A DNA stretch of 64,000 nucleotides, taken from Takakia lepidozioides (Eukaryota > Plantae > Bryophyta). Under the pieces are notes generated by a model, which was given only the letters and a program-made list of their open reading frames with translations, was not told the DNA's origin and made no database searches. The stretch is from the NCBI GenBank assembly GCA_030704615.1, contig CM060734.1, forward strand, positions 47,926,001-47,990,000. The letters run 5' to 3'. A program made the translations under genes and the position numbers. Positions 24,078 through 61,560 of this stretch are shown in pieces. The stretch's first letter is position 1. Every line of letters starts with the position of its first letter.

Positions 24078-27000
24078 ATGGCGCATGCCCTCCGCAGCTC
24101 TCCGCTGCTCTGCTGCGCTGCACCGGAGGCAGCAGGCTGGCGCGCACACGAAGGGCAGGCGGGCAGGGTGCGATGGTGTAGGCTGCAGCGGATGGTGTCG
24201 CTGAGGCGAGCTGCGTGCCCTGCCCCTGCATTGCCGGTTCAGGCTGCCAGTGCTGATAGTAGCGCTTATGCGGGAGTGTCCGTCTACAAACCTTCGTCCT
24301 ACGATGTGCTCGTATCCGGTATGTCCCATTTTGGGTAACCTGCAGGCATTTCTGGTTTTAATTTTATCTTGAATTTCGAGCGACCACAGTGGTCGGATGA
24401 GAAGTGACTAGAGAGGACTCATAGCTGCGTGGAAGGTTTTTTTAACGGTAGTATGTCTTGCGTGCTTTGGAGATGCCTGGAATTCAATATGCACCTATAC
24501 TTCAACTAGCTTTGAGTAGATAGAGACCGCATGTTGAGGTTTGTTTATGGAGCCCTGGGCTCTGAGCTAGTAAGCTTCATGACAATTGTGCTGACAGTAC
24601 ATAGTGGGCTTGGGTACTTCGCTGTGGTGGAGTTGGAGTGACTCATTGGGTGGCTGTCGTATTTTTCTTCCCGCCTGGTAACGAGTACAACAGCAGCAAT
24701 TTAAATTGTGCTGATGGTCATTACTGGAAAACCGAGGGTTTGCAGATGCAGCAAAGGCACTCAGTTATGCTCTGGATGACGTCAAGAAGCGAATTGAAAT
24801 TGATTTCCCGTACGCTTCTGATCTTCCTGCTTGCCATCATAGGTGTTATTTGCAAGGACAAGAGAGGACTTTGTCAAGTGGGATAGATAATGCAAGTAGT
24901 TTTGTCTTCACGCCCTCCTCTCCTTTCAGTTTCCTCTTTGGTGGGCATCTATTTTCCATTTGCCTAATATAATCAATACTGACATGAATTCTTCATCCTG
25001 TTTCTTCATGATATCTCTGGCTCCTCTCTTGCTTGGCTGGGGTGCTAGTTATCTGTGATAAAGCATGATACTTTTCCTTTTTTTGGATGATGGCAGGCCA
25101 TTGCCAAGCAGCATATCTGGGTACCAGGTGCACTTTGTCATTCCCAGGTTTCCTTCTGTGATAGTTTCCCTTGTGTTTATGTGACTTGCTCAAGAAATCA
25201 CGTTAGCTTTAATTTAAGAGTTGCCTTGATTGGTCTCTTCATGTGATTCAAATGTTGAGCTTGCTTTTTCATTCTTATAAATTTACTTCAATCTCCCTGA
25301 CTAGATGTTTCTTCTTTGTTTTTGTTCTCAGTGTCAGTCAAGTATATACTTGATTTGGAAGGTAGATTACAACTTTTTCTGATGACTATTGCACAATGTG
25401 ATCGGCAGGGAGCATCAGATGAGTTTATTGATGCCAACATCCAACTGGCTTTAGCTCTAGCACGCAAGCTTCAGGAAGCGGAAGGCATCACGTCATGTCT
25501 TGTAGGTCCCTTGTGTTGCCTATGAGATCTTATATTCACAAGCTCGTGTTTTCCTGAAATAGATGTAGTGGCCCCATAAAGACCCTTGGAAGTTGTGGGA
25601 GGCATCCCAGAGATTGAAGGGAGACATGAGAATGTTTTGTGTGTTCAGTCCAGTTATCTTTTATTGTACGATTGTTGATGGTAGTTTTGCAGTCTGTTTT
25701 TCACCTGCTAAACTGAGACCTGTGAGACAAGCTGTCAGGGGTGACGCAACGTTTTTGATGATGACAGGTTTTCCCTGATAAACCCGAGAAGCGACGGGCT
25801 TCGAGAATGTTTCGGTCAGCATTTGATCTTGTAAGCATGGTTATTACGGCACAAGATCTAATGTATTTGGTAGTGTCAGTCTTCAAAGCATTATACTCCA
25901 TGTTTTGAGGAGTCATATCTAAGTCTTGCATAGATGATTGTTGATGTGATTCAATGACATCTCGGGAGAAAATATCTTGCACTGCAGGTTTGATATTTTG
26001 GTGGGGTGAAGGGTGTTTTGTGTGAGGTTTAGGAGCAGGGCCAGGATAGATTTGAGGAGTCAGAGTCATATCGAAGTCTTGCATAGATGACTGTCGATGT
26101 GACTCAAAGGCAACTCAGGGGAGATAAAATATCTTGTAGTGCTGTTTTGAATTCTTGGTGGGGTTAAGGGTTTGTTGTGTGGGGTTTAGGAGCGGGGCCA
26201 GGATAGGTGGGAGGGTGAGTGTTGATGCCATATCATGTGGGTTGTCATGCAGACAGATGGGATCACTGTGGGCTGTTTGGATGATGTTCCTGGTGGAGCA
26301 GCAAAAAGTTTTTGGGGAATGTTACGGAATGCCCTTGATTTTGACTTTGAAGAAGATGTGGAAGGCATTGTCCTCTGCCAGACTCTCAAATGACCTCTGT
26401 AGCAATGATAGAATGCAGTGCAAAGAGACTTTTTTGTGATTTTTGTCCTCTGATGGTGAGCAAGTAGTTCTATGAAGAGCTGATTTGTAGTTTCAAAACA
26501 AGGCATCAAACTTCTGTCTAGGACAACACTTTGACTGGTCAGGCCTGTGGGCGTATTAGTGTTTGTGATGGTGATTGTGTTGACATTCCATTTTGGTGTG
26601 GGGGGAACACAGGCAAGTGGCAAACGAATGCAGCAGCAGGGTTGTACATTATACTAAATTGCAGCACAGCGGAGCTACCAGCAGTGGAGCAATATGTGGT
26701 ATGCTGGCATTGCCTGCATGATGTGACTAGGACCTCAGACCCCTACACAGTGCAGGGAGGTTTGCCAGGTCGATGAGCTTGTCAGTGGATTAGGGGCATG
26801 TGCTGTTGCTTATTAGTGACTTAGCAACAGCAGGGCTAAAATAAATCATAACTTTCTTGGTTCCTACTTCAGTAGTTAGCCTTTATGCATGTATCCATGT
26901 TTGATAGTCGTGTTCCTTGTATGCAGTCCTTCCACATCTGCTCAAGAAGCCTAAGAGGTCACCAGATAGCCTTTCTGCCTCGGCTGTTTTCTTGACCTGC

Positions 27001-30218: not shown

Positions 30219-33200
30219 TTACTGAAGTTTTTTGGTCTGCTGATCCACTGGAGGCTGGGTCTGGCGAGCTCTTGGCCTAAACAAGGCATCATCCTTAATA
30301 AAGCTCCACCAGAAGTAGGTTAGTGGAAGGGTTGTAGCATGCCATATGGCATGTGCATCAAAGACTCCCCACAGGGGTGGGAAATCGTAGATCTCCAGAA
30401 ACATTGTGAGAACTGTCCCATAGATAACTGTCAGTAGCTTGTGACGGGCTGGGTGGCGGACCGCGACACTCCACACTCCCCATAGCAGGAGCTGGGCCAC
30501 ACCCATTGCAACACACACCTTCATGTTCCAACCTGTCACATCACCCCGTCAAACATACGCAATTGTAGTTACTTCTGAACACAAATCCTCCTTTCTGACC
30601 TGACAGAAACCTGTCTAGTCTTCTCTTAAAGATTTGAGGACTCAATAACATTTCCAAACTTAGCCAATTTCGGAATGACTGCGATTGGCTCAAACTTCTC
30701 CAAACTGTACGAGATGAGTTGCAGGGACAGTTGTTGGGATGCTTTCAAAGAGGGCCGCTTGTTTTGAAGAGTACAAATATTTGCTACCCTCAACCATGCT
30801 GAAATGCGACATATGGAACTTAGAAGAGTACAAATATTTGACACCCTCAACCATGCCGAAATGCGACATTGGAACTTAGTATACAGAGGAAAATGACCTA
30901 CTCTAAAGAGACCCACTTGCTCATCAAAGCCTGTGCAGAATAGGTCTGTGCCCAGTGTCTCCATTTTGAGCAATACTTTCTGTACCCTTGGTGCAAATCT
31001 TGTCTACTGACTTCTTGAGATTACCGAACCCTTTCACGTATTCATAACTAAATGCCTCTGCCCAAGATGAGTCCCTGAAAACACAAACGTGTCTCCAGCG
31101 AGACAAAATGTAATACTAAGACATTGTTTGCCGTAGCCTTGTGGCCACACCGCGCCCATTTTGTGCGGAACAAGAATGAACAGACACTACCAGTGTGAGG
31201 GCTCACTCTAGTAGTGGGACTTAACCTCAATATAACAATTTGTTTGGGCTTTCCCGATTTCCTTTAGAAGCCCTAGAAACGAAGCATCGATGCCCATCCC
31301 CAAGAGGGCCAGGGTATTAGGCTCAGCCTCGAGATTTTGGAAGTGGGTGAACAGCAGGGACTATGCTATTGATGGTCCTGATGAGGGTCGCTCTCTGATG
31401 ACATTGTATCAGAAAATGGATAGTCTTCAGGTCGCCTGCACATTGGGCATTGACAATCTCCCTTTCCTCTCTAGCATCTATTTATTGTTCAGAAGTAGAC
31501 TCCCCGACCTTAGTTTAAATTTCAGTCTAGTGCCAAGGGTAGGTGAGCCCTTCAGGTCATCCTTGAGGTCCTCACCCATGTCACAGACTGGAAACAGGTT
31601 CAGGGAGAGTTCGGACATTCTTCATGCTTCCAACATGACCTTAGACACTTCAGCCTCCAAATCTAGCAGGGTCAGTTCTTTCCTGCCTATTTAGATAGAG
31701 GAAGTGATAGCTGCAGATTCATCCCTGCGGTGAGGAGCTGTTAGTGACCGGGTATTTGAGAATGGTTTATTATTTAAGGGTATCTGGTATTAAGCATGCA
31801 ATTCAATTGACCCCACCATCTGACCTTGAACTCATCACATCAAGAGCTCAAGGGCGGTATGCCATACTCGCCCCAAACAGCCACGTTAGCTGTTCTAGAG
31901 CATGCTGACATGCTTTCTTTGAGCACCAAACGCTGAATGGGTTCTCAAGTATTAGCATGGTTGGTAGCATACTCTCCCAATGAGACAGAGAGAGAATGAA
32001 CTATCTCTGTCACACTGGGAGACTAGAATGCGAACTGTGGAGAGAAGAGTCAGTTTACTTACCATAGTCAAATTTGTACAGATTCAAGTACAAGATGTGA
32101 GTGGACACAAACGCAATAGTAGGGGCCGCTACCATCACCCTCTGTGCCTCAATCCTGAAATTGAATGTTCGAATGATTGCGAGCATCAAAGAATATCCCA
32201 TCAACACAATGGCGGATGAATAGTCCATCTTCTCTGTGAAACCTATGTCTCTGCACACACACCCAATTCCAAGAGATTACCACCCAATTCTCAATGTGGG
32301 TATACCTCTTCTTCAAAGTGAGAGCCTCGAAGCAACAAAGAGTCTAAACACAAAATCATATTCTCACATGCTTCACAAGACCTTTTCTGAAGGGGAAGAC
32401 AAAACCTCAGAAGGAGAATGTAGTTCATCAATCGAGTACAGGCAGCAAGACGGACTAGTAGCTTCTCACCGAGAATGGAATACAGCGCTCCAAATCCATG
32501 AATTGATTGACAAAAGGCCGTAGATGGTCCAGAGGCCTGCATATTCATAGTACTGAACCTTAGTGCCTTGGGCTGGCACTGGAAGCTTCAGTAGCATCAA
32601 AAAGGACCATAGGCCTTGAAAGTGAACGAGTAGATTCAGCATGGAAAACGCCACTGATGCTGGCTCCTGCATAGATTGAGCACAACTTATATTGGATTCA
32701 GTCAAAGTGAGGACTGTTTTTCCAAGAGAGACGTTTTCTGGATCCATGAGCAACGTAGGAAAGAGAATCATGAGTATTCGCGTGCTGCAATATAGGCCAT
32801 TCGGTGACAACACTCCAGGGAGGCTCACATGTAACAAACATGCAAGTGTTAATAACAACTTGGATATTGTAACATGTCACAGTTTAATTCGGGGTCCACC
32901 AGCAAAAAACCACCGCGATTGAATTTATCCTAGTTGACTACACCCTCTCCAGCTGCAACTACCGTCTGGCTAGTGACCAGAAAAATCGGCTCCATTGGCA
33001 GCTACCACGTGGCTTAGGACGACCACCAGGACTGATCTACACTTTGCAATGCTTGCTAGACATGAAATCAAGGTTCATTTTTTCAACCACAACCTGCTGG
33101 GATAAATAGCAACCTTCTCCCTCCAAAAAAGAACATCTCATTTCCGTCTCCTGGCACAGCCACATTGAAGCATTTGGCGATCTCTAAGTGCCACGACAGG

Positions 33201-33748
33201 ATCAACACAATGCAAGCAGTCGTACGCTGGCGGCCTAAAACCTCGCCTTTATCCGCCGGCAAAGAAAGACGACTCCTTATTGCCCAGAATTCATCACGCC
33301 CTTGTGGCATTCAAAACAGAGATAGAGACAAAAAAGCAGGGACATCGTGCCAGACCTGGAGACTGAATAGACGGACAAAAGGCCATCGGCCATGGTACTT
33401 GACTGGCGGCAGCTCCTCCGCCTGTCTCTCCACCTCCCGCTTGAGCATACATTGGTACCGGCATTCGCTCAGGCAATCCCACTCTCTCCACCGCAAATAA
33501 AAGGGCTCCTTCGGAGTAAACCCATCTCCCTGCCGATCAATCCCGTCGACAGGAAAGTTGCAACCACTGATCAAGCAGGCGCCATCTACACACCCACTCT
33601 CTCCACAGCTCTCCACGCAGGAGCTGTAAAGCGGATGGGCATCTCCAGCACTCGCTTCACAAACCGTGAGAAGGCAATGGAGAAGGAGGGGCAGCAGTAG
33701 TACTGGCTGCCCCAGCTGCCTCCTTACGGAGGGCACCGAAGCTCGCAT
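30219..33748 (-). CDS. PGAP3: Post-GPI attachment to proteins factor 3 (Per1-like), 4 exons
   Basis: Exons 33356-33748, 32470-32666, 32063-32250 and 30219-30532, all GT-AG and phase-consistent. Signal peptide, ASAGD, WDCLSECRYQCM, KYHGRWPF, QEPASVAFS, WSAVFHSRD, TEKMDYSSA and DFPPLWGVFDAHAIWH. Confidence 0.95.
30766..30879 (+). repeat. ~58 bp tandem duplication in PGAP3 intron 3
   Basis: GAAGAGTACAAATATTTG..ACCCTCAACCATGC.GAAATGCGACAT..GGAACTTAG x2. Confidence 0.85.
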
Positions 33749-34698: not shown

Positions 34699-37600
34699 CT
34701 ATAGAGACGTACCACACTTGCAAGAGACACTTGGAGTCGGCAAGCAATTTGGTGCATACGAGAATCTGCAGCAGAATGTAACCTAATGAGCTGCTGGCTA
34801 AGTTGCAAACCTCCTTGGTAGGCCAAAACATTTCTATGAATGGCAGGATAATATGTTTACAGGTACCACAACCTGCCCTCTCTTAAATCCGAGGAGATTC
34901 CCACACAGACAGTTAATACGAGTTCCTCAAACTTCACAAAGACGAATTTGATTCCACATGAAAGAGACAAATGAATGGTTGATCCATGATTTTGCGTACA
35001 CAATCCACATGAATGTCACAATGCACATTCTCTGTATCGGCTTCATGAAATGGTAGTCAAAGAGGGAACGTGCTGAGCTTGGACTTACTTTCTTCTAGAC
35101 TTGTCCACCTTTGGAATGATACCAGTAAGGCAGTTATTGCTGACATCCCTGCGAAACACACATCGGGACACATTATTTTAATGGATGGTGATTGAGACTG
35201 GACAATATTATTCTGAGGGGTGCCCTCTAAATGGTTTAGTGATGGCAATTCGTAATCAGAGAAGGTTTCTATACCCCCAGTATAACATTTATTGCCTCAC
35301 CTTGGACTTGAGGGGCCTCCACTGTATCAGCAACCAACACAGTTCTGTCCAGATCACAGGAATACCAACAAACTAGGAAACAATTCTGTATTGGAGTTCC
35401 ATTTCACAAAAAATGCTAAAGTTTGGTAAGAAACTCACAGGAGGTCAAAATGTGAGATGTTGGTTGTTGCCGGTAATCTCCCACTCAAGTAGTTGTTTGA
35501 TAAATTTCTGGATCGATCAAATCAGGTTGGGTGAGAAATGGATGACCATTGTTAAAATCACTCTGTCCAGCTCTTCCTAAGGTCAGATTTTAGCAATGAC
35601 CTCACAAAGACATTTGCACCTAATGTTAATTAGAGAGAGAGATGACTCCGGCCAAGGCCGCCGTAACTAAAGAGCCACTTCACCTTAAGGCTACTGCCCC
35701 CTTTCGGGGTTGGGCTCTATATAATGTTAATTATATTGAAGTCAAGAGCAGCTCCAGCTAGGAAGATAATGACCAAGCAAAATGGTGATGTGATCAGAAG
35801 TAGAGTACTCACATGGATGTGACATTGAGGCTTTCAAGAAGAGCTGCTGGGATCTCCCCAAATAATATGTTGTTGCTCAAATCCCTAATCACAGATGCAA
35901 GAGGCCCAGAATAATAATGCCTGATGTATGATCTTCACTACCAGCATCATTGGCATTCTAAAAGGGATTAAGACAGAATCGCATCTGATGTTTTTAGAGG
36001 TGTTTCAAGCACAAAACTGCATTCATTATCATTTAACACCTCTGGATCATGAGAGATTAAAGCAATCGCCTTGTTTCATCTTATAATGGTGGTTACTCAC
36101 ACGCTCTTTAGATTGGGTAGGTTCTGAAGGTCTTCTGGAAGTCCTCCCAAAAATGCATTGTGTGACAAATCCCTGCCATCCATATGATCACTCTTCAGAT
36201 CATCGAGAGTAGAAGGACTCAGTAATTGATGGCAACAACTGTACAATCCATAAGAAGACATGCCTGCACAATTGGATAATTTGTACTCACTAAGGGAAAC
36301 TCCACCTAGCAGATACTCTACTGCCCCAAGATTGACCATGACATCCCTTAAAACCAAGAGAGTGGTCAAGTCCCTCACTGACCGAATCAAAATTGCGGAA
36401 AATGAACGTCTGGCGTAGTGTGTGCACTGAAAGACTCTAAACACACCTTGCAATGGGCAAAAATATGGGTGCACCGAATTTGGAAATTACTCGTTAGAGA
36501 GGGACCAGTGACTCACAATTTTTGTAGGTTGGGAAGACGCTGGAAGCCTGGTACCCTGCAAGTTTTATTGGTCTCGTTAGGAATGGGTTGCACGGAATGA
36601 GTGGGGAAAAGATGATCGTGCTGTTTATGCATATTAGGTTGCAAATCTACATGCAGGTAGAGAGAATTGTTGGTGGGGAGGTGGGGAGACTTGCCTCAGT
36701 GCTCAAGGTTTTTTGTTTTGGAGTCAGTGATGAGGTTTTAAACCCCCTTACCTCCAGAAGAATGCAAAGCAACGCGAGAGAAAGAGCATTGACACTGTAT
36801 TGAAAAGATGATATGATCCCAAACAAAGTTATTTCTACCCTTTACTCCTGTCAATTTTCACACCCCAATTGAAGATCAATTGGCAGAATGTCATCCTCTG
36901 GGGGTATAGAAGGGAGAGAGGAAATGAAATGAAACGAAATGGTACTGTATAGAGTCCGCGGAAAGCTCAAAGAGCTTATGGGACAAAAGGGAAAAACAAG
37001 AAAGAAGAGACAAAGCCACAGCCAAAAGCAGCCCAGAAGCAAACAGATCAAGAAATGAAATGAAATGAAATGGTGCTTTATAACGTCCGTCAAGAAAGAA
37101 AGGAACTTCATAGTGTCCCTGGGAGAAAGAAAGAGAAATCAGATCAGAAAAGTTGGGGCCCCAACAACTGGCTGGAAAGCATGTCAAATTCAACACATGC
37201 TACATTTAGACAAGTATATCAACTTACTGGGGTGGTAGTGGTGGAAACGTGGGCAGAGTCGGCATGGGTACAGGTCGTGTATAGTTCCTGCATGCAATTG
37301 ACAATAAAAACCTGAGCCAATATTGTAATGGAATGCATACAAGAAGGCACTAGTATGGCCCTACTGGTCACCTTTAATGGCCCATGAACTCAGCTTCATT
37401 GCTTCAGGCTACTCTCCAGGTGGCATGTACACATGCACCGAACACTATCTAGACGATATAGAAAATGCTTACAAAACTGAAACCTTGAACCTTAAGCCTT
37501 GAGCCAAGCCAAATTAAAGAGAAATGAAATGAAATGGTGCTTTATAGAGAGAAAGGAGGGCCTAGTTGGAAGAATCTTATAGGAGGTTGAGATACGTTGT

Positions 37601-40600
37601 GAAGTAAGAAAAGCTCTAGAGGAATGCACAGAAATGCCAACTGCTAGTATACATCTGCTCACCATGGAGGCAGGTGTGGTAGAGTTGGGAGAGGCTGTGT
37701 GGCATTCCTGTGTCACCGCAGCCAATCATCGCAAATCAGTTTTCGTTAAAATTCCACCTAGATTCAGTCCATTGAAAATGTGAGCATGGTTTGATCCATA
37801 CGATACATTTGCAATTTGTATATAATTATTTAAAAAGATGTTGAGTGAGGGGCATAGTGTAAGGTCCTTGAGCTGATGACCAACTGAACCTTCTTGCAGT
37901 CAAAGTTTTGAGGATTGATTTAATTGACACTGTCGACTTGGGGAGAGGTGGTGGGCAGGGATGCTTACATAGTAGTTGGAGGAGGGAACGCAGTCACATT
38001 CGGAAGACTGAAGTTACTGGCAATTGGATCACAAGCACACATTGTATTAGCAACAGTGCTATAAGTGACGAGTTGTTTGTGGAAAGTTGTATTAAGCATA
38101 ACATTTGTGAAACTTATTGGGAAAGTTTAAATAGATCTGAAATGGTACCATCAGGGGACATAAATTGGAGGAGTTGCTTACAGTGGTGGAAGAGGCGGGA
38201 AGGCGGTTGCATTGGGAAAACTGAAGTTCCTGGCAATGGATCATAAGCACACATTGTATTAGCACACAGTGTTATAAGTGAGGATATTTGCTGCAGTACT
38301 GGGGTGAGAGGAAGCAGTGTCACAAACGACCAGCAAAAGAACCAACGGCATGTGACAGCCATGATGGGAGGTGGGATTGGATGCGTACAATTGTGAAAAA
38401 CCCTTGAAACAAATCTGAAATGGTACCATCAGGAGACATAAATTGGAGGAGGTGCTTACAATGGTGGAAGAGGCGGGAAGGCAGTTGCATTTGGAAAACT
38501 GAAGTTCCTGGCAGTTGATCGCAAGCACACATTGTATTAGCACAAAGTGCTATAAGTGACAGGAAATTTGCTGGAGTAATGGGGTGAGAGGAAGCCATGA
38601 TGAGAGGCGGGATTGAATGCTTAAGGTTGTGGAAAACGTGGGAATGTCCATGGTGGAAATGCTATGTTTTTTGGAAAGATGCACAAGCAGATGTATTATT
38701 AGGCAAACAGACCTTGAAACAGATTTGAAATGGTAACATCAGACAGTGAATATTGATGAGTTGCTTGCAAAGGTGGAAGAAACGGGAAGGTTCAGTTGCT
38801 GGAAAATCAGCAGAAGCACATTGTGTATTACAGCGCGCACCAGGCAATGTCTTTCAAACCCCAGCACAAAAGATCAAGAGACAACACTATATTACAGCGA
38901 TTAAATAGAGACTCTTACAGTTGTGGAAGAGGTGGTAGAGCTGGAAATGTCCAATTCCTGGAAATCCATCACAAGTAGTATATCACCAGCACTGTTGGCA
39001 CCATTTTGAAGCCAGAACTGCTGTAGTAATAGTGCACGACAACAGCGATTGTTGCAATTGATCTTAAGAAACAACTATGTGGGCTTTGGACCATAAAGAG
39101 AAGTGGGAATGGGTACTTACAATGGTGGCAAGGGAGGGAAGGTGGTGGCATTTGGGAATGTCCAGTTTCTGGCAAATGACCACAAGTAAACATTATATCA
39201 ATACAAATGTTCCAAGGGTTTTAAAGCAGGTACTCACCAGTACTAGCTTTCTCTTGTCCCATAAGCTTCATTTCAGGTCATTTAATTTGTTTGTTTGTTT
39301 CTCACCCACACACTACGTTAGACATTTCTTGGTTGGTCTGCTTGTCTCAGTCTGTTCTCTTTTCAGGTTCAATGAGTTCAGCAACTTGGTGATTGGAGAA
39401 TGGATAGAGCTGCAGACGCAAGATTCTATCGCCGGACGACCAGGAATGTCTCCTGATAGAACTGCAACAAATAACCTCACAGAAAGCTCAAAGAGCTTAT
39501 GTCACAAAAGAAAGCAGGAAGAGGACAAGCACATAGTGTTTGACATCAAGTAGAGTAAGGACTTAAAACCCCAGCGTCTAAGAGATCACAAGTACAGTCA
39601 TGAAGTAAGAACTGGGAACTAGATTCTTACGGTTGTGGAAGATGTGGCAGAGGTGGAAATGTACAATTCCTGGAAATCCATCACGATCAATGTCACAGGG
39701 ACTACTGTGATGATTTTGAAGCCAGAACTGGTGTAATACTAGTGGATGACAACAGTGCCTGTTGCAATCAACCTAAAGAAGCACTTGTTGGTGCTCTCGG
39801 AACAAAAATAGAAGGGGGGATGGATGCTCAAAATAGTGGAAGGGGAGGGAAGGCGGTGACATTTGGAAATGTCTAGTTTCTGGCCATTGACCACGAGCAA
39901 ACGTTGTATCAACAAAAGTATTGCAAGGGTTTGCAAAGAGTTGCTTGTGTATAATGATTGAGTGCGGTTTTTCCCTTCACAAATAGTATGAAGAGAGACC
40001 ACCTCACGCATCTGACCATGGACGTGCGGTGAAATGAGATGTTTGCAGAGGTGGAATACTTCAAATACAATCTCCAATTGCTGCAAATCGTTGAAAAGAG
40101 AGCAGACTGAGAAAATACAGAAACCAAGAAAGGGGCACTCTGAACCCTAATTGGCAATAACCCAAAAAATGGAGGTGGGACTGGATACTTACGGTTGTGG
40201 AAAAGGTGGGAAGGTCGGGAGATGGGGGAACGTCCAGTTTCTGCCGAGCAATCAGAAATACAATGTCAGTACCAACATTCGTGCCGGTGTGTTGAGTGGG
40301 TCTAAGACTTGTTGCAATCAACTTGAGAACAGTCACTGCATTAACAAACCGCTTACAATTGAACTTGACGTTCGCACAGATATATTGAGAGAAGTGGCAT
40401 ATAATACTTACGGTTGTGGAAAATGTGGCAGAGGTGGAAAGGTCCAGTTCCTGGAAAAAAGGTCACAAGACAACAGCTTGCTACATCAAAGCAGAGGGAA
40501 TCAACCCCACAACTGGGATAATGAGTGGGGGGAATTTCCTCAATGTTGCAATGGACCTGCAAATAAAACAGACGGCTACAACAGAAAATGCAGAACTGGA

Positions 40601-43600
40601 TATCAAATGCTTACAGTGGAGGGAGAGGCGGGAAAGCGGTCGCATTTGGAAATGTCCAGTTGCTGGAAAATAATGACAGCACGCAAATTAGCAGATCAGT
40701 CACAGATTGCAAGGGATATCTTTTAACTGATGTCGTAAGGAAGTGAAAGATTTCGATGATGAATCAACCGGAGGAATTGAACTGATTGATACCAGACTAT
40801 GAAGTGGAAACGGGATGCTTACGGTTGTGGGAGAGGTGGCAGAGGAGGAAACGTCCAGTTCCTGGAAAATGATCACAGTGACGTGTATCAAGAGTGCTCA
40901 TTATCGTAAGGTTATAGAACCAAGGCAGTTGCCAGCCTTGTTGCACAATCAGCCTGTTAAGAACTCAATATTGGATGGTTATGTAAGACAGAGAGTCCTA
41001 GTATATGCTTTTACTGTCGACAGAAGCAGGAACATCGTCCTGGGCAGACGTTCCAGAACAGATTGACGTATATCACTGTCACTCTCTAGAGTAATGGTGT
41101 TGTTGCTGCAGGGTTGTTGCACGTAACAAATTCAGCCTAACTGAGCAATCAATATGGAAACGAGAAATGCGAGTTTACAGAATGCATACAGTGGTGGAAC
41201 AGGCGGAAACATGGTGGCATTTGGAAATGTCCAGTTGCTGAAATGGATGACAAGCACATCTTTTATCAGAAAGGAACATTACAGGTGCAAACCCAGTTCT
41301 AGTGTACTGTACACATGGTTTTCTTTTCAAGAGAATATAATGCTTGCAACAGGTAACAGTCACGGGCCCTCATTCAGGAATTGACCAAACACCAATCAGA
41401 AAGCCTACTGAAGAAGCCTGTACTCAATACTTACGGTTGTGGAAGAGGTGGAAACGTCCAGTTCCTGGAAAAAGGTCACAAGCACAACAGTTTGGACATC
41501 ACATAATTATGTTAAGGGAATCACCCCCACAACTGGGATAGTGAGTAGGAGGAATTTCCTCACAGTTGCAATCGACCTGCATATAAAACAGATGGCTACA
41601 TTAGATAAAGCGGAGCTGGATCAAATGCTTACAGTGGAGGAAGAGGCGGGAAAGCGGTCGCATTTGGAAATGTCCAGTTGCTGGAAAATAATGACAGCAC
41701 GCAAATTAGCAGACCAGTCACAGATTGCAACCTGGGCTATCTTTTAACCAGGCTGTATTGACGTGATAAGGAAGTGAAAGAATTCAACATGATGAATCAA
41801 CCTGAGGAATTGGACAGGCTGATGATCAGACCATGAAGTGGGAATTGGATGCTTACAACGGTGGAAGAGGCGGGAATGCTGTTGCATTTGGAAACGTCCA
41901 GTTTCTGGAGAATGATCACCAACAGTCAAATGTTGTGCATAATTAATTAACAGAAGGATTGCAGTTGATCTTGAAAGTACCCGTCCAGACCTGTATACTG
42001 TGAAGTCGCATAGGATACTTACGGTTGTGGAAAAGGTGGAAACGTCCAGTTCCTGCACACACCAGCACATGAGGTTTAAGTTGTGAAGCCAAACGCAATA
42101 TTGTAACAGATTCCAACTACGGGAACGAAGAACTTGCAAGCACATGTAGCTCCAAGTGTTTGAACCTCAATAGTACTGCCAAAGCCTATGGCATTTGGAA
42201 AGACCCAGAAACTTTCCAGGGACATGATGAATATCACAAGGCTCGGTCGCATTAAAAGGATCACATTGGTGAACATGACATCAGAATTTGATCTTGACAG
42301 TCCCCACAGACAATATAGTACTACGAAGTGCATCGAATTCTTACAGTTGTGGAAGAGGTGGCAGACCTGGAAACGTCCAGTTCCTGCAATTTAAAAAGTT
42401 CACAACCACCAGTCCTGATGAGAATCATTTCCCCATCGTTGCAGTAATGGATTCCAGATGACAAGCTGTAAAATGGTAATGTGCAAGCACATATCGTACT
42501 GGTATAACTGGAAGGTTTTGTCCAGAACACTACTAGTCTCAAGAATGTCATTTCTGAATTCAATCTTGTAGTATATTAGATCGTGAGTTGCTTCGGAGCA
42601 AATGTACATGTACATAGATGGGAATGGGACTGGAGGTGGAAGATCATAAACGACCTTTAAGTACACTTCCTGGAAAATGATTGTACACTTGAGCACATGC
42701 TTTAAGATCTCGAGCTAACCATACGTGCAAGGTTTTCCGATCCCGTTGTACAGTGTCAGTCAGCTGACAGACAAAATGCCTGGTGCAGCATTTATATTTG
42801 TGCTTCTTATGCAGCTTAAACCTCAGGGACAAGAATTGCTTCAATTCACTTACCAGGGGGCCAAAGGAGGCAAACTTGGGAACGTGAAGTTGGGAAATGG
42901 GAAGTTCGGGAACCTGCAGGAAGTCACCAAAACGAGCCAAAAACGTACGTGTACGTAAGATGCAGGCAGTGCGCTGAGGCCTGAAGTTGCAGTGCGAGGG
43001 AAGGTAGAGTTTAAAGACAGTGACTTTTGTATCGATTGCGCTTTATTATTGCAGAACTTTGACATGTTACAAGGAAGTCCTGTTGAACAAACAGAGGCCA
43101 ACTTACGGGAGTAAAGGAATGATTGGTGGCCATGGGCCTCCAGGTAGTAGCCCCGTCATATTGTTCCCTGACAAAATTCTGTGCAGAGCAATCGGACAGA
43201 AAATCAGTTACTTACATACGTTCGATTAGATGCCACAAAAAAACGCATGAGATTTATGATGAAATTGTTACTACTTGGGTTACAGTATATTTTGGCCTGT
43301 GATCTAGAGCTCGGTAGTGGAGGAAGATCAATCGGAGAAGAAGGACAACATTCACGCACTCAGACACACAAGCTGTGAACAATAGAGCACAGTACAGATA
43401 AACCTAATTACAGCCTCGATTACAGCTCTAAAGTGAAAAATTGCATGTCTGAACTCGTAGAGGCTAGACAGGTAAATAAAGCTAAGCACATCATGTTCAC
43501 GACTATATATCTGTACATTTTCTGTGACGTTACAACTGAAGAGCCAAGCTCTAGACTAGCTCGAGGGAGGAGGGACTTCTTACAGGTTGATGAGGTCTGT

Positions 43601-45573
43601 GAGGTCGAAGATGCCTGATGGGAAAATGCCTGCCAGCAATGGGTTGCTGGCAATTACCCTGAAAAAGAATCATAATAGCCCAAACCAGGTTATCCTTCAT
43701 GAACTACAGAGGGCTACGCTGTGATTTTAAGAAAACAATTAGTATTCTGGTGCCCACGACCCAGAAAGACAAGTACTTAGGCCTGCAGCAGTCCACAAGG
43801 GTCTTTTTCCATGCACGTCATTCAGATAGGTCATATGTAATGCACGACTCACAAGGTTCTAAGGTTTCTGAGATCGGCAATGGCTTGTGGAATGCCTGCA
43901 CTGAGGGAAGTTCTGTTGATGACAAGACTTTCCAAGAATCCGAGGCTCCCGATCTCATTCTGTTGGTCAAAGTCACCACATCTCCTCCAATCAGCAACGG
44001 GAGGGCACAGCCTCGGCACAGTTCTCAACACATGTAGATAATGGCAGTCTAAAGCATGTCTGTTTAAATTGTCCGGGTCAGACCTTCCATAAATATTTAA
44101 ACTTTAAACTAGTTCACGATTTCAAATATCTAAGACGCATCTGATGTGTGGTTCTTATTCTTATTGATCTCGAGCCAAACAAAATGTCCTAAATTTGTTA
44201 CAAACTTGTACAGGTCTGTAACTAGTCTCTTCATGATCCTGAAAGGGGACGATCTGCTTAGGAGAGTAGACGTGCGGGACCTTTTCCTTCGGACTGTACT
44301 TGCTTTAGAATTAATGTGTGGTCCAGGTTTGAAAATATGTACACTACTGGGTGACAAGGGTGTTAAGTGCTCACAGGAAGAGGACCTTTGAAATCACTTC
44401 CATGCAGTGTCCTACAAGCGCAAACATGGTAAATTTTTTGTTAAGCTTTCACCTTTGAGCTAATGGAAAGGAGGCATGGAACATTCTTCCCCTTTCAATA
44501 CAGGCCTAGCCTCTTCTCTTCTTGGTTGGAAGAAGAACTCCAAAGGGAGGTGGCACCATGACTTATATTGACACATCTTGCACATGAATCGTGATAAGTA
44601 TAACTGAGACTCGGTGGTTAGTGAGAATTGCACATGTATTCGCAACTGAGAATTGCAAAACTTCGCGTAGACTGGACATCCAGACCTCATCCAGAATATA
44701 TATTACAGTGCTCAGATGATCTATCAGCTCGCCGATCAGACGGGTATCATGTCTGAACAAAGGCAAGTGCTATTATAACAGTACTTAAGACATCTGATTC
44801 TACAATAGCCATCGAGCACATTAATCTGTCATTAAGTATATTAAATAAACTGACGACCTTACTTCGTTGTACATATGTATTCAGGCATGCACCGTGAAAG
44901 CACCCGGAAATAAATATTAGAGTCGATTCTCGAGTGCTATCCATGTACTTTCTAAGACGTCAAGATTGGCCTCGGAACTTGAGCAAACTTACAGGCCGGT
45001 CACAGAGGTGTGCTCTTTGTTGCAAGTCACCCCACGCCAGTGCCCAGAGCATGGTTTTGCGTGATGTCCCCATGATTTCAGGGCATCGGGACAGGCCAAA
45101 GCATTTTTGAATTTTATAAGCGCATGCGCTGTATCAACAGCCAACAGAATATGGAGTAAGTACTAGATCAGGTCAGAACTTACTGACATTCAGATCGAGA
45201 AATCTTAATCTTTCATTTTATATATATATTCTAGACACTAGTCTGACAGTCTGTGCGGAACTCAGCTGGCTTCTTCCTGGAGCCACAAGCAGCTCAATTA
45301 ATGTACACCGGGTTTTCATTATTCTGCAAGTACTCAGTTTTAGGCATATATACATTAAGGATATTGGTAAGAGGGTGCACGCAGATCATGAATACACTAG
45401 GTGCATCATCTTTTCAAGAGCTGGCCTAGTCTCTATCAACAGCTTGAGAAGCGCTTACCTTGATCGATTACAAGCTTGTTGTCGGATGCTGTGGAACAGG
45501 GTAGAAGCAATGCCAACAGCAGGGGTAACAAGATCATCATGACCATCTCTCTTGGTGGTACCTTGGATCGCAT
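34699..45573 (-). CDS. Secreted extracellular LRR protein with a micro-exon-encoded Pro-rich/N-glycosylated island; up to 31 coding exons (590 aa with all modules, 306 aa with none)
   Basis: Exons: 45459-45573 signal peptide (MVMMILLPLLLALLLPCSTA); 44993-45128 LRRNT cap (ALIKFKNAL..LKSWG..PCSGHWRGVTC); LRR exons 44375-44411, 43853-43959, 43584-43658 and 43107-43178; 19 micro-exons between 42913 and 37228; half-LRR 36517-36555; LRR exons 36101-36172, 35813-35884, 35439-35507 and 35089-35148; terminal exon 34699-34765 (FSYAPNCLPTPSVSCKCGTSL*). All are GT-AG, phases match and there are no internal stops. No TM or kinase domain is seen. Confidence 0.88.
37228..42913 (-). repeat. Array of 19 intact symmetric micro-exons plus decayed copies
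   Basis: Intact exons (nt): 42854-42913(60), 42345-42383(39), 42023-42052(30), 41857-41904(48), 41633-41680(48), 41435-41464(30), 41190-41237(48), 40823-40861(39), 40615-40662(48), 40412-40450(39), 40193-40240(48), 39631-39669(39), 39121-39168(48), 38919-38957(39), 38460-38507(48), 38182-38229(48), 37969-38016(48), 37663-37707(45), 37228-37287(60). Each is CAG|...|GT(AAG/ATG/GAG) with length 3n. Confidence 0.92.
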
Positions 45574-47858: not shown

Positions 47859-50800
47859 TCAACTTGGACCCAGAAATTGGACCACAGATTGAGCAGTACA
47901 GTAAGCAATAGACTGTACAGTGACCATTGGATTCACCCCTGATGCGGTCGGGAAAACACTTGCATCCCCTACGAAAAGCCCTTCAACCTCCCACGTTTCA
48001 CCCTGAGGGTCTACTACGGAGACCATAGGATCAGGGCCCATTCGGCAACTTCCCATTTGATGTGCTGAAGCAAGCTGAACACTTCCCTTAACGAGCCCCT
48101 TTGTCCTAAGACGGTGTAGAAATTCCTCAATCTCTGAGTGTGAAGCTCCCAGAACTTGGAGACTCGACTGCCCTACTTGGTGCTGGGTGCCAACCTCAAC
48201 AGCTCCAGCAGCAATGAGAATTCGTAAAGCTTTCTCCGTTCCTTCAACCAAAGTATCTGCATCATGTTTACTGATATCATAATCGATTTTAGGTTGTCCA
48301 TCCTTCTCTATCTGAACTGTCCCGCTGCCTTCATCACGAGTCAATACAATAATATGGGCGGTCCTTGGGTACCGCCGCAATCTGTCCTTGAAGGTGGCCC
48401 CTGAGCGCCAGGGTGTTAGAGCTCCAAAGAATGCGGGCAGCATAAACGGAACTTCCAGCAATGCGCCATAACCCGTGGTCTCCCACTTAGCAGCTTCATA
48501 TGAGACACACGTCATAATTCCACCTTCATAGACAGTTCCCTTAGGTCCTGTGCCTTCAGGAAAATAACCCCACGCCATCTGGACAGGGTGAAGATGCAAA
48601 TTCTTCCCTATGTTTGGATTTGTAAGACCGCTTCTAAGCAAAAGGGGAGGGGTCATTAACGATCCGCAAGCCACCACTGTCGCTCGGGCAGAGATGAACA
48701 GGCGAGCCGGCCCACTACCAACAGTGGCAACCACACCCTCGGCCTGCCGGGCCTTCCTAGATTTCTTGTGGTTAGGGGAGTGGAGAACCGCATCAGCAGT
48801 ACACCCGACCAGAATCACAGCGTTATGAGTGGTTGCATCCACAAGCCATGTCTCGGAGGTTGCTTGCTTCATACCAGTCCGGCACCCAAGAGCACAGTGC
48901 CCACAGTTGTGCTCGGTTCCGGCATTTCTGGGAATGTTACCCACCTGCACAGATATCAACAGATCAATGTGAGTCCATCATGCAAGGAGGTCAAACTTGC
49001 CAGGTGCGAGAATTGGAGTTCACAAGCTTTAGCCCGCATAAAGTTCAATCTAAACACATGTGTACATAGTTGAAATCAAGACGTACATAACTAAATTATA
49101 TGTACAGTTAGAATCCAGAAATCTTACCAAATAGCCCAGTTTCTCGCAACCTTCCCTAAGAACCTTATTCTGGAAACTTTCCTGACGAAATTCCGACTGC
49201 ACACCGAGACGTGAGCACACCGCGTCCATGGCCTGCTGATAATCCTCGCTTCCAAACAGAGAGAGCTCGTGGACCTCCGACCATTCGCGAAGCACATGGG
49301 CAGGAGTCTTGAACGACGCGGCCCAATTGATTGCTGTACCCCCTCCGACAGTGGTTCCTGCCAATATACCGATACTTCCATCCTCCGTTGACAACAGACC
49401 TCCCCTCTCGTACATCTCCCTGTAAGTGGGTCCTTCTAGCAATGACAAGTCTTGTCTTGCAAAGTACCGTCCTTTTTCTAGAATTACAACTCTGAAACCC
49501 GCTTCCGCCAGCACTGCAGCGACTACCCCTCCTCCTGCGCCAGACCCGATAACCACCACATCACATTCGATTGCCACATCCCTCTCTGATGGTTTCCTAT
49601 CTTTGCTGGCCAGCTCAACCTTGGAGGCATCATCCAACACTGTGCATCCAGCCTTGGAGAGTAGAGACCGCAGAGAAGAAGTGTCGCCTGCCGAAGCTCC
49701 CAAATCGACCACTTTATTTTCAAGAGGCCTGGGAGACAACTGATGAGGGGCTCTGAAATTAGAAATGGGGTTTGCCAAGTCGACACCAGAGTAGCCAATG
49801 GCGTTATGTACAGGGTTGCGCCCATTAGCATCAACCTGCATCCAAAAGAAACTCTCAAGTGCAGATTTAAATTACTTTCAAATTGCAAACTTGCACAGAC
49901 TGATTGATCGATATATATATATATATCACTGAGATGGCTTCCTAAGTAGGCAGACAAGTTTACTTCTTCAAGTCTCTCTCTTTCTTTCTTCACATGATAC
50001 TAATTACTCCTGAGGCCCTAACTTCCTGCCACAGGTCTCACAAAATAAGAAACAAACAGTAACTCAAGGTACAAACTCGAACCTTGCTGTAAAAGAGAAA
50101 TTGACTGTAGCTCTTGAATATCTTGAAAATTGATCGAAAGAGAGCTATAGAACTGTCCGCCCAGCTGATCATGATCTGTTCCCTCCTCATAGGAGTCACT
50201 TCTGAAAACTTTTGAAAGAATGGAAAGTCGGTCGTCAAACCCTTCCAACCAGCCAAACAAAACGTGCCAAACCGAGTAGAGAGAAGCCAAAGCACTATAC
50301 TAATTAAGCTCAAGACTGGAGACTTCAGTCGTTCTGTCATCGCACCTGCAACCTGCAGCATATTATCGAACCAATAGGGGAGGTGAGATCTAGTGTCTTT
50401 GGGTCTTGAATCAGAATGGGCTGCAGGTAAGACGAGCTGCGAATGTACGTACCATGTTCAGGTACAAAGGCTATTCGATTATTTATCGAGCACTTGCACC
50501 ATATTGCACACATCTACATGTTCCCTCTATAATCGCTGGCCACAAGAATAAACTTACACTCCCCAGAAGTGGTCCAAGCAAGAAGGATAATGTAGACAAG
50601 TTTGATCTACATAGAAATTTCCCCTTCTACTTCCCTAAGTAGTTCCCATTAGATCACGAATGTACCAATCATGAACGACTTACCTCGACAGGGAGTCCAG
50701 CGGCAGACGCAGACAAGCGGTAGAAAGCATCAACGTCGTCATGCAATTTTTTGGCGACATATTCAGGATCTTCGTCGAGAGACGTCCTGAATTGGTTCGT

Positions 50801-51058
50801 TTCTCCAGCCGCCTTGTGGGGGATAGATGGTATCAAGGTATCACACACTGTACTGAGGGCTTCCATCTGATTGACTGAGAATGTGTGTGTGTGGGGTGCT
50901 CGACCACCCCTCAGTAAAGCGTGGGTGCGAGACATCAAGGTGCCTGTCCCTTGGTCACCCGAATTCGGGGAATCCATCTCTTGTAAATCCTTCGTTCTGG
51001 GAGCGGTGGCGCCCTGCGCTGTCTCGTCTTCAGAGGAAAACCCATCAGCAGGAGCCAT
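47859..51058 (-). CDS. FAO: Long-chain (fatty) alcohol oxidase, GMC oxidoreductase family, 4 exons, 812 aa
   Basis: Exons 50684-51058, 50083-50352, 49128-49835 and 47859-48944, all phase 0 and GT-AG. Motifs DVVVIGSGAGGG, ILAGTTVGGGTAINW, CGHC, GKNLHLHP, SAHQMGSCRMG and DASVFPTASGVNPMVT. Confidence 0.96.
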
Positions 51059-54809: not shown

Positions 54810-57800
54810 AATCTATGAAGCGAGACGTTTGTTTTGTTTTGTTTTGTAGCGTTGAGATGTCCCAAACCGCGAGACCCCAACACTGGTGCTTGGTGCCGTT
54901 GGAAAGCCCTCGACGAGGAGGGGTGCACGGGCTTGGTCTCACGATTTTTGGACCTGTGGTGTGGGAGATACGGAATTCCAAGTACTTTTGATCGTTGAAA
55001 ATTCACGAAAAGTAGCAAAAATGGCAAAGTGAGCATTCTTGAGACAATGGTTGGAGCCTCGACGAGAGAGATATCAAGGGAAAGGTCTCTGGTTCAAATC
55101 TAGTAGTAGGCTATGTGCAAAAAAAATGCATTTGGACTTAGATGACATTGGACACTTGGGCCAATGGCACAGGCTACCCTAGATTGATGGGAGATATATC
55201 AATAATGAATTGGATATTACTACTCAATAAATTCATGAAAAAAATAAATGGGGCCTTGACATGGGAGACGTACTTGGATACATAGGAGATTGCACATTGA
55301 GCTTAGATGGGTCTCAACATGGGAGACGCACATGGGAGACGCCCTTGGTACATAGGGTATGGCACTTGGGCTTAGATAGACAACGACATATGAGATGCAC
55401 AGGGATACGTAGGAAATTGCACTTGATCTTAGATTTCAATTTTTCACACATGCAGTCAACAGCAGAGGCTACCCTAGAGGTCGCACTTGGGCCTCTACAT
55501 GGGAGACGTACTTGGATACATAGGAGATTGCACTTGGGCCAATGGCATAGGCTACCCTAGAGGTCGCATTTGGGCCTCGACATAGGAGACGCAATACATG
55601 AATAGAAGATTGCACTGGGGTTTAGATGGGCCTCGACATAGGAGACACATTTGGATATATAGAAAATTACACTTGGTCTTAGATTTCAATTATTGACACA
55701 TGGGCCTCGACATAGGAGAAAAAAATGATCAGACTTAAATGACTTAGATGACATTTGACACTTTGGCCAACGGCACAGGCTACCCTAGTATATATAGGAA
55801 GACAAGTAATCTATGAAGGAAGCGAGACGTACGTTTGTTTGTTTTGTTTTGTTTTGTTTTGTTTTTTCGTTGAGATGTCCCAAACCGCGGGGCCCAGCCT
55901 TGGTGCTTGGTACCTTTTGAAAGCCTTCGACGAGGAGGGTGCACGGGCTTGGTCTCATGATTTTTGGACCAGCGGTGTGGGAGATGTCGAATTTCAAGTC
56001 CTTTTGGTCGCCGGAAATTCGCAAAAAATAGGAAAGTGGGCTTTCCTGGCACAATGATCGGAGCCTCGACGGGAGAGATATCAAGGAAAATGTCTCCAGT
56101 TCAAATCTGGTCATAGGCTCTATGGAAAAAATGATTATATATGGCTTGTTTTATATATTAATCACTACAACAGATCGCGGTAGTTATGACTGCCAAACCG
56201 TGGTAGTCATGGTTTTCATGACTTTGACCATGACTGCACCATGTTTTTATTTGAAATTGACCTCCCGCAGTCGTTCATACGACTGTAGTCATATGAACGA
56301 CTATCTAAATAGTCGTCTGTATGACTACATGACTCCGGAATGGGCGGAAGGCTGGTCAACGACAATTGACCAGATTTAGCTCACCATTCATAGTCATTTC
56401 CATGACTACAGTGTACATGGATGAGGTTACGTAGTCATGATGACTAATGGGGATTTTGTAATTTGGTGTGTATAATACAATTAAAACACCATATGATCAT
56501 ATGAATGACGAATGGGTGTATTGGTTAACAGGTAGTGAACTATAACTCTTATAGTAAAGAGGTTGTAGGTTCAAACTCCTCTAAGTACAATCAAATAGAT
56601 AAGATGGCCCTAGGGTTAGTAGGCAAGCTAGAGATAACACGTGGTATCCTAGATGGACTGTCACGTGGTTTTTTCATTATTATAAAATGCATTATGACAT
56701 GTGGCACAATGCGGTGCGACGTGGCGTTTAACATATGTTTTTATTTTTTTTATTTTTTTTATTTAATTTAATTTTTTAAATCAATTGCGCCTCGCCACGT
56801 GGCGCGGCAGCGGCGGCTGTAGTATGGTATATATGACTGCAATGAGAGATATCACTTGGTTCATATGACTGTAGTCATCCGGACCGTACCATCCTGTACT
56901 CATTGTATTGACTTGGTTTGCACGACTTACAGTCATAGAAGTCATATGTACCGTTTATGACTGTAGAATAGTCATATATACAGTCATAAATACCGCGATC
57001 TGTTGTAGTGAATGCACTTGGACTTAGATGACATTAGACACTTGGGCCAACGGCACAGACTACTCTAGTCAATATATGAATCGAGACGTTTGTTTGTTTT
57101 GTTTTGTTTTGTTTTGTTTTGTAGCATTAAAATGTCCCAAACCGCAAGGCTCCGGCGTTGGTGTTTGGTACCGTTGAAAAGCCCTCGACGAGGAGGGGTG
57201 CACCGGCTTGGTCTCATGACTTTTGGAGGTCTGCAGTGTGGGAGATGTGGAATTCCAAGTACTTTTGGTCGCTGGAAATTCACAAAAAATACCCAAAATG
57301 GCAAAGTAGGCATTCCTGGGACAATGGTTGAAGCTTCGAAGGGAGAGATATCAAGGAAAAGGTCTCCAGTTCAAATCTAGTCGTAGGCTCTGTGGAAAAA
57401 AACTTACTTAGATCACATTGGACACTTGGGCCAATGACACAGGCTATCCTAGGGCCTAGAGGTTGCACTTGGGCCTCGACATAGGAGACGCACTTGGATA
57501 CATAGGAAATTGCATTGGATACATAGGAGATTGGACTTGGGCTTAGATGACAATGGACAATTGGGGCTCAATATGGGAGATGCACTTGGATACATGAATA
57601 GAAGATTGCACTTGGATACATAGAAAATTACATTTGGTCTTAGATTTCAATTCTTCATATGTGGGCCAAACGGCATAGGCTCTGTGGAAAAAAACATGCA
57701 TTTGGACTTAGCTGACATTGGACCCTTAGGCCAACGGCAGAGGCTACCCTAGAGGTCGTACTTGGGCCTCGACATAGGAGACGCACTTGCATACATAGGA

Positions 57801-58170
57801 GATTGCACTTGGGCTTAGATGACACTTGACACTTGGGCCAACGGTACAGGCTACCCTGGAGTCATACTTGGGCCTAGACATAGGAGACGCACTTGAATAC
57901 ATAAGAGATTGCACTTGGGTATACACATGATCTTGGACACTTGGGCCAACGGCACAGGCTACCCAAAAATTTGGGAAAATAGCAAAGTGGGCTTTTCTGG
58001 ACAATGATTGGAGCCTTGACATGACATATATCAATAATAATTGGATATATAGTAACTCAATAAATTCATGAAAAAATTGAATTGGACCTTAACATAGAAG
58101 ACGAACTTGGATACATAGGAGATTGCACTTGGGCTTAGATGACACTAGACATTTGGGCCTCTACATAGAG
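54810..58170 (+). repeat. Complex satellite / TE-subterminal repeat block
   Basis: Three ~320-370 bp units (~54810, ~55810, ~57075; GTTTT runs followed by ATGTCCCAAACCGC) are interleaved with many short CACTTGG(G/A) and CATAGGAGA repeats. Confidence 0.85.
56163..57010. mobile_element. Complete non-autonomous CACTA (En/Spm) element, 848 bp
   Basis: ~30-bp TIRs CACTACAACAGATCGCGGTAGTTATGACTG / CAGTCATAAATACCGCGATCTGTTGTAGTG (1 mismatch). 3-bp TSD AAT at 56160-56162 and 57011-57013. Many ATGAC/GTCAT subterminal repeats. Confidence 0.95.
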
Positions 58171-58171
58171 A

Positions 58172-58363
58172 TGTTGTCGTGCACATACATATCGCTACAC
58201 AACTACATCGCTGTCCAAAACCACACAACTGTACATGTGCACACCAAACACTAGTCTATCACTAGTCCACCACTAGGCAACCACTAGTCACCACTAGTGC
58301 AGCTACTAGTCCAACCACAAGGCTGCCACTAGCCACCACTAGTGCAGCCACTAGTCCATCACA
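58172..58363 (-). mobile_element. Candidate 3' LTR (192 bp, TG...CA) preceded by a polypurine tract
   Basis: On the minus strand TAGGGGGGCGAT is followed by TGTGATGG...GACAACA, downstream of the integrase. No matching 5' LTR is in the window. Confidence 0.55.
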
Positions 58364-61300: not shown

Positions 61301-61560
61301 GATCAAGCCCGAGTCAACCACCTATAAAAACAAGTGCCCACACAAAACTAGCATGGCGCACAATCAAGCATGCAAGTGTGGAGGGGATCCAAACACAAGA
61401 ATGAAAACAACAACTCCCCCACACCCAAAACACCTCCACAATGTCGCTTCTACAACCCAAGCCAAACCCGGACTGACTCTTGCCTCTACCTACGGAAAGG
61501 TCTTGGCCTACGGAGAAGGTGGAAAGCTATGAGGAAGAGAAGCTACAGCAACGCCTAACC
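58364..61560 (-). mobile_element. Ty3/gypsy copy 2: gag (CCHC knuckle) joined directly to an integrase remnant with a PHD finger
   Basis: The 390-aa gag (59861-61033) ends CWTCGGPHVKKDC. The integrase shows AHEELGHFG..YWW..CMVC, WSLDFAGPLP, EHFSKWIE, TDQGKEF and SPYFILFGREP. PR, RT and RH are absent. Confidence 0.9.

Follow-up and report, generated by a model that had tools for sequence, protein, structure and literature searches.

An array of symmetric micro-exons encodes a proline-rich island in a leucine-rich repeat gene of Takakia lepidozioides

Does a long run of micro-exons of uniform phase inside a plant gene serve to make many proteins from one locus, or does it build one unusual protein? 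The question is raised by a minus-strand gene in a 64,000-nt window of the Takakia lepidozioides genome (CM060734.1, 47,926,001-47,990,000; all positions below are counted within this window), which encodes a secreted leucine-rich repeat (LRR) protein whose fourth repeat is split by the product of 19 micro-exons. An earlier note, made from the sequence alone, had proposed a combinatorial-splicing system comparable to Dscam or to the micro-exon genes (MEGs) of schistosomes. Our analysis favors a different explanation, where the micro-exons probably encode a proline-rich island or spacer, N-glycosylated and mostly constitutive, that has been resized over evolution by the birth and death of exons. 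The gene is real and unusual, and at least its 3' part is transcribed and spliced; it is apparently undescribed. Its reading as a generator of diversity is unproven and partly contradicted.

By inspection of the sequence, 19 stop-free exons run on the minus strand from 42913 to 37228, with lengths of 30, 39, 45, 48 or 60 nt, all multiples of three and summing to 852 nt (284 codons). Each is preceded by AG and followed by GT and opens one base into a codon (phase 2-2), and the LRR exons on both sides of the array are likewise in phase 2. The lengths, phases and splice sites had been described in the earlier note and were recovered here, as were the separating introns, which it put at ~120-520 nt and which measure 118-523 nt. 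A pattern composed of an acceptor, a module start and a donor has 10 matches in the window and 0 in 100 shuffles. The modules amount to 16 distinct peptides, all variants of one motif, and forward joins between them are free of stops in 207 of 210 combinations. The three unsafe joins are those in which the first module (42854-42913), which ends in TG, meets any of the three modules that start with A. A satellite or chance origin of the array was rejected on the shuffle test, a tandem-repeat scan, selection within the modules, and a spliced contig. The inventory of 19 exons stands as such, but one of them (39631-39669) is skipped and appears decayed, and three dead copies, together with a 39-nt exon encoding half an LRR (36517-36555), had been missed.

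Two sequencing runs (X1 and X2) gave matches, both as assembled contigs; their RNA nature is a guess, and a probable one for X1. Transcripts containing the micro-exons, whose absence would by the earlier note have refuted the exon call, were looked for, and contig X1/1 uses eleven of the exons at their predicted ends. This contig (1175 nt, depth 16.8) aligns to the minus strand as eleven pieces, each of them a module, joined in genomic order, and its joints (10 among those listed) remove introns at the predicted AG/GT ends. As the depth of every bin that bears modules is matched exactly by X1/1 alone, the coverage of this contig accounts for all module depth, and there is thus no second exon combination among the aligned contigs listed. 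A model of mutually exclusive exons was rejected because eleven modules lie in one contig. X1/1 joins 40193 straight to 39168, omitting a dead copy at 39879 along with the intact-looking exon 39631-39669, and also leaves out the dead copies near 38800 and 38640. Its remaining 600 nt would be accounted for by the coding exons downstream (379 nt) and an untranslated region of about 220 nt. Run X2 covers a dispersed repeat only, pieces of which (a CATTT-rich tract and a short conserved motif) lie in three introns of the gene (36915-37110, 37507-37555 and 39215-39560). Dozens of unrelated contigs from both runs carry the tract and the motif joined, with a summed depth of up to 300, which indicates a common transcribed repeat of the genome.

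Differences between the modules fall mostly on synonymous positions. Six disjoint module pairs differ at 18 synonymous but 9 non-synonymous positions (pN/pS 0.16, P=3.7e-6), and the pair 41857-41904 and 41633-41680 has 6 synonymous changes and no non-synonymous ones (P=2.6e-4 against site proportions), exactly the count on which the earlier note had based its argument for coding selection. To judge by these counts, the modules are under purifying selection. Their composition is 34% Pro, 14% Phe, 12% Thr and 11% Asn, and the 265 insert residues include a single Arg and no Asp, Glu or Lys. N-x-S/T sequons hold 27 of the 28 module Asn residues. The middle residue of the sequon varies (W, A, F, Y, C or V) while N and S/T stay fixed, which points to selection for N-glycans, and the insert is thus probably N-glycosylated. 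An extensin or arabinogalactan protein (AGP) reading was rejected, as the insert holds zero Ser-Pro3+ motifs and almost no AGP dipeptides. Discrete, repeated modules of 10-20 residues in a secreted protein could also suggest a polyprotein from which proline-rich peptides are freed by proteases. We find this hardly credible: acidic or dibasic sites are lacking in a chain so poor in charge, the sequon at each module start argues for an intact glycosylated chain, and the LRR register runs on across the insert.

How the array has grown can be read from the blocks that it repeats. In a self-comparison, exon-plus-intron blocks of 507, 314 and 192 nt have been duplicated at 78-90%, and the duplicated blocks take in introns (40403-40876 with 41426-41919, 80%; 38909-39221 with 39621-39932, 78%; 38126-38315 with 38404-38595, 90%). 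The unit of duplication that emerges from this comparison is one symmetric micro-exon together with its intron. The earlier note had described the flanking introns as diverged; this holds for the pair that it quoted (41857-41904 and 41633-41680), whose flanks are alike at 55-61% versus a random baseline of 51%, but not for recent duplicates, where intron similarity is 79-83%. Since symmetric phase is what renders such duplication tolerable, it cannot count as proof of alternative splicing. The pair that X1/1 skips (39832-39879 with 39631-39669) is exactly one duplicate block of the 38909-39221 and 39621-39932 pairing. It differs from its sister block by 3 synonymous and 8 non-synonymous changes (pN/pS 0.91), as expected of a block that is no longer translated, and exon 39631-39669 differs from its duplicate (38919-38957) by 1 synonymous and 3 non-synonymous changes.

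The skipped block is also flanked by the strongest inverted repeat of the 6.9-kb array (42 nt, 86%, E=6e-6). Its arms, at 40092-40131 and 39325-39365, sit in the introns on either side of the block and enclose no other exon, and the intronic insertion that holds the downstream arm is missing from the sister block. The stem is predicted in both the minimum-energy and the centroid fold, and about 35 bp of it pair with probabilities close to 1; in two tests, each of 200 local shuffles, its score was reached once. Human data show lower inclusion of exons which intronic structure loops out (PMC10691357). The stem may similarly loop the block out of the pre-mRNA, which makes it a candidate cause of the skip.

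What kind of protein hosts this array? Exon-by-exon phase arithmetic yields an open frame on the minus strand from 45546 to 34699, which encodes, in order, a signal peptide, an LRRNT_2 cap, three complete LRRs, the first half of LRR4, the insert, the rest of LRR4 in register from a 39-nt exon, four further LRRs, and a cysteine-containing C-cap with the stop codon. The protein has 297 residues without modules, 568 with 18 and 581 with 19, and the insert, which spans about 280-300 residues, splits the fourth of eight LRRs. The LRRs are of the plant type, 24 residues long, and together with the signal peptide and the LRRNT_2 cap they carry the features of the plant extracellular LRR superfamily. 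The gene is present as a single copy in the window. Between the C-cap stop and the next gene, which starts near 33700, there is no fitting transmembrane or kinase exon. An anchor exon drawn from the hydrophobic stretch near 34120 was rejected, given its weak acceptor and interrupting charged residues, and an exon call at 43853-44048 was rejected because its 5' part is intron. A good donor at 34713, inside the last exon, could join acceptors at 34600 or 34120 to give alternative short C-termini, one of them hydrophobic. The earlier description of the host as a secreted LRR gene with an insert is borne out in its architecture, but not in the combinatorial Dscam- or MEG-like diversity attached to it.

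We suggest that in this secreted LRR protein, which lacks an anchor and a kinase, the insert forms an uncharged, densely N-glycosylated, proline-rich loop within LRR4. It is most likely an extended, stiff, sugar-coated stalk or spacer between the four-repeat halves, which would hold, shield or position them in the cell wall. The insert would have grown by tandem duplication of the micro-exon and intron unit, with the symmetric phase allowing module copies to be gained or lost without a frameshift. Live modules would be spliced mostly constitutively and in order, such that length shifts on an evolutionary time scale. One duplicated two-exon block appears to be undergoing retirement, presumably looped out by the inverted repeat and decaying since.

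Several observations weigh against this explanation. The splicing evidence is one contig from one run, taken as RNA by guess and with a depth of 16.8, and contig assembly loses minor isoforms. The ratio of the skipped block rests on 11 changes only. The match between stem and skip was noticed after the fact; by duplex energy the stem comes first of 12,720 window pairs, narrowly and not as an outlier, and one other 6.9-kb tile (55209-62109) holds a stronger inverted repeat (52.7 bits). No orthologue was found with single-exon queries. Finally, X1/1 starts at 40925, 64 nt inside an intron, and depth is zero across 41000-43190, so the seven 5' modules and exon 6 lack RNA coverage. This break could come from a 31-mer common to the modules at 41680 and 40662, from low depth or from 3' bias. 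It could also mean that the expressed unit in the sampled tissue is a shorter transcript, begun within the intron near 40925, with the 5' half silent or separately used; the share of words (0.04) is closer to that of the 3' contig alone (0.069) than to that of the full transcript (0.095). We regard such an internal start as improbable, as its lead of intron sequence contains in-frame stops and lacks a signal peptide, the 5' modules are under strong purifying selection, the shared 31-mer tangles assembly exactly at the break, and low depth with 3' bias would be enough. The seven 5' modules are thus presumably spliced as well, given their splice signals and conservation.

Could skipping nevertheless be used by the living plant? 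A length rheostat can be envisaged, in which regulated or stochastic skipping of modules gives stalks of graded length and glycan load in different tissues or conditions, with the inverted repeat as one switch. Since the module peptides are variants of one motif, skipping would change length and glycan number more than sequence. Every module is a multiple of three and in phase 2, almost all forward joins are free of stops, polypyrimidine tracts are modest, the intact-looking exon 39631-39669 is skipped in spite of a normal AG and GT, and the contig breaks where isoform variety could fragment the assembly. Against this, a second exon combination is not seen among the aligned contigs, which lose rare forms; symmetry is also a precondition for duplication and needs no splicing function; and the skipped exon is without purifying selection. 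We therefore consider a rheostat possible but unlikely, and still prefer a mostly constitutive island.

A diversifier in the sense of Dscam or the MEGs, in which combinatorial splicing would supply immunity or self-recognition with many variants for recognition or as decoys, is much less probable. A symmetric micro-exon array within a secreted protein does recall such systems, and it occupies the island position, which diversifies in immune receptor-like proteins (RLPs) (PMC10834447). However, a single contig in genomic order explains all depth on the modules, and the lone skip removes a neutrally decaying duplicate. MEGs encode secreted products with a central run of 10-20 short exons, mostly multiples of three (bioRxiv 2023.06.21.545858), and such a run is found here; yet this run consists of tandem copies of a single motif set within a folded LRR protein, with no homology to MEGs. 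MEGs also have verified splice variants, where our data show one contig with one skip and no second combination, in an assembly that would miss rare forms. Their dN/dS is high (PMC4350168), whereas the modules are near-identical and conserved, with a low pN/pS between paralogs. In Dscam1, one exon is chosen per cluster (PMC1397879). Tandem exon duplication is common to both genes, and intronic RNA pairing may steer exon choice in both, but at least 11 exons are co-included here rather than mutually exclusive, they encode a low-complexity stalk and not variant binding surfaces, and there is one strong inverted pair in place of a series of per-exon selectors with a docking site. The LRR exons, moreover, are not duplicated as alternatives. 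In the ROCO genes of brown algae, LRRs are shuffled units that are alternatively spliced and under diversifying selection (PMC11378527). These arrays resemble ours in having one repeat per symmetric exon and in exon turnover, but the duplicated units here form a non-LRR insert under purifying selection. A plant analogue of the MEGs, conceived as a soluble protein of an island and four LRRs whose glycosylated island is resized by combinatorial micro-exon skipping, partly gated by intronic stems, to give many apoplastic isoforms of an undescribed LRR-stalk-LRR family, strikes us as doubtful.

Among plant LRR proteins, PGIPs carry some ten LRRs without a large insert. The Takakia protein shares the signal peptide, LRRNT, short solenoid, cysteine C-cap and absence of an anchor with PGIP-like soluble LRR proteins, but has eight LRRs and a large insert; exon-level matches to PGIPs are weak (E 0.03-0.4) and no better than those to other plant LRRs. 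The island domains of RLPs precede the last four LRRs, span 40-75 residues and belong to membrane receptors (PMC10834447). LRRs of the plant type, with a single large insert ahead of the final four repeats, are also found in our gene, as in LRR-RLPs as well as LRR-RLK-Xb proteins (Cf-type RLPs, BRI1 and PSKR1). Its insert, however, has about 290 residues versus 40-75, holds no lysine and so no Kx5Y or Yx8KG motif, and follows only four LRRs in a protein with no transmembrane segment or kinase. LRX proteins carry a C-terminal Ser-Pro3-5 domain (PMC4769139). With LRX/PEX proteins the gene has in common secretion, LRRs and a proline-rich region, probably associated with the wall, but here this region is internal, lacks Ser-Pro3-5, is rich in Phe/Trp and N-sequons, and is encoded with one repeat per exon. 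By the tests run, the gene belongs to none of the compared families, and works most like a chimera of LRRs and a glycostalk with an oversized island.

Searches for homologues used exons singly, and such short queries limit sensitivity. The LRRNT and LRR5 exons gave no homologue candidates, a result limited by query length, and a representative search with 43853-44048, intronic in its 5' part, returned only generic LRR proteins at 34-50% identity. Two module patterns had no matches in metagenome contigs. The earlier note knew of no described plant equivalent, and our literature search, with many subscription papers outside its reach, likewise found no plant description of such an arrangement. 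The features of the gene are collected in Table 1.

Table 1. Exons of the LRR gene, modules and dead copies of the array, and intronic inverted repeat (window positions)
Feature	Position	Strand	Evidence
Exon 1: hydrophobic signal peptide with the start codon; donor in phase 1	45459-45546	-	Sequence inspection; prediction
Exon 2: LRR N-terminal cap (LRRNT_2)	44993-45128	-	Pfam PF08263 E=1.6e-9; Atlas score 0.95
Exon 3 (37 nt): start of first LRR, phase 2 to 0	44375-44411	-	Frame and LRR register
Exon 4 (107 nt): end of LRR1 and LRR2	43853-43959	-	Similarity to plant LRR-receptor chains in PDB (down to E=1e-12)
Exon 5 (75 nt): LRR3	43584-43658	-	Frame/phase model
Exon 6 (72 nt): LRR4 up to its middle, followed by the 12 proline-rich residues with which the insert opens	43107-43178	-	Frame and LRR register
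Seven 5' modules	42854-42913, 42345-42383, 42023-42052, 41857-41904, 41633-41680, 41435-41464, 41190-41237	-	Splice signals and purifying selection; outside contig coverage
Four modules, spliced in transcript	40823-40861, 40615-40662, 40412-40450, 40193-40240	-	Contig X1/1
Upstream inverted-repeat arm	40092-40131	-	Repeat search and folding
Dead module copy (internal stop, GT donor lost), skipped	39832-39879	-	Sequence and contig X1/1
Intact-looking module, absent from transcript contig	39631-39669	-	Contig X1/1 and comparison with duplicate
Downstream inverted-repeat arm, within intronic insertion carrying dispersed-repeat pieces	39325-39365	-	Repeat search and folding
Seven 3' modules, spliced in transcript	39121-39168, 38919-38957, 38460-38507, 38182-38229, 37969-38016, 37663-37707, 37228-37287	-	Contig X1/1
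Dead module copy (stop codon, GC donor)	38769-38798	-	Inside 411-nt joint of contig X1/1
Further decayed module remnant	about 38620-38655	-	Inside 411-nt joint of contig X1/1
39-nt exon: second half of interrupted LRR4	36517-36555	-	Frame; hydrophobic-residue register
LRR5 exon (72 nt)	36101-36172	-	Pfam LRR_1 E=0.011
LRR6 exon (72 nt)	35813-35884	-	Frame and LRR register
LRR7 exon (69 nt)	35439-35507	-	Frame and LRR register
LRR8 exon (60 nt)	35089-35148	-	Frame and LRR register
Last coding exon: C-cap with cysteine, and stop codon; lacks a transmembrane segment	34699-34765	-	Sequence

The downstream neighbor, at about 30220-33700 on the same (minus) strand, is presumably PGAP3/Per1-like, as recognized from its translated exons. 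Upstream, also on the minus strand, 47860-51058 encodes a long-chain alcohol oxidase (FAO4-like, a GMC oxidoreductase) whose best relatives are land-plant proteins at 56-58% identity. The tile 55209-62109 carries several tandem arrays (57479-58362), and tandem repeats of longer period lie elsewhere in the window, at 7397-8086 (286 nt x 2.5) and 25910-26206 (157 nt x 1.9).

Even if its splicing is constitutive, the gene encodes a plant LRR protein of the cell surface whose island exceeds the usual maximum about fourfold and is built from one glyco-module per exon, a layout that escapes gene finders. The array shows the birth and death of exons under way, and one duplicate is a candidate for silencing by an intronic RNA stem. 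Combinatorial skipping, if true, would make this the first MEG-like system in plants.

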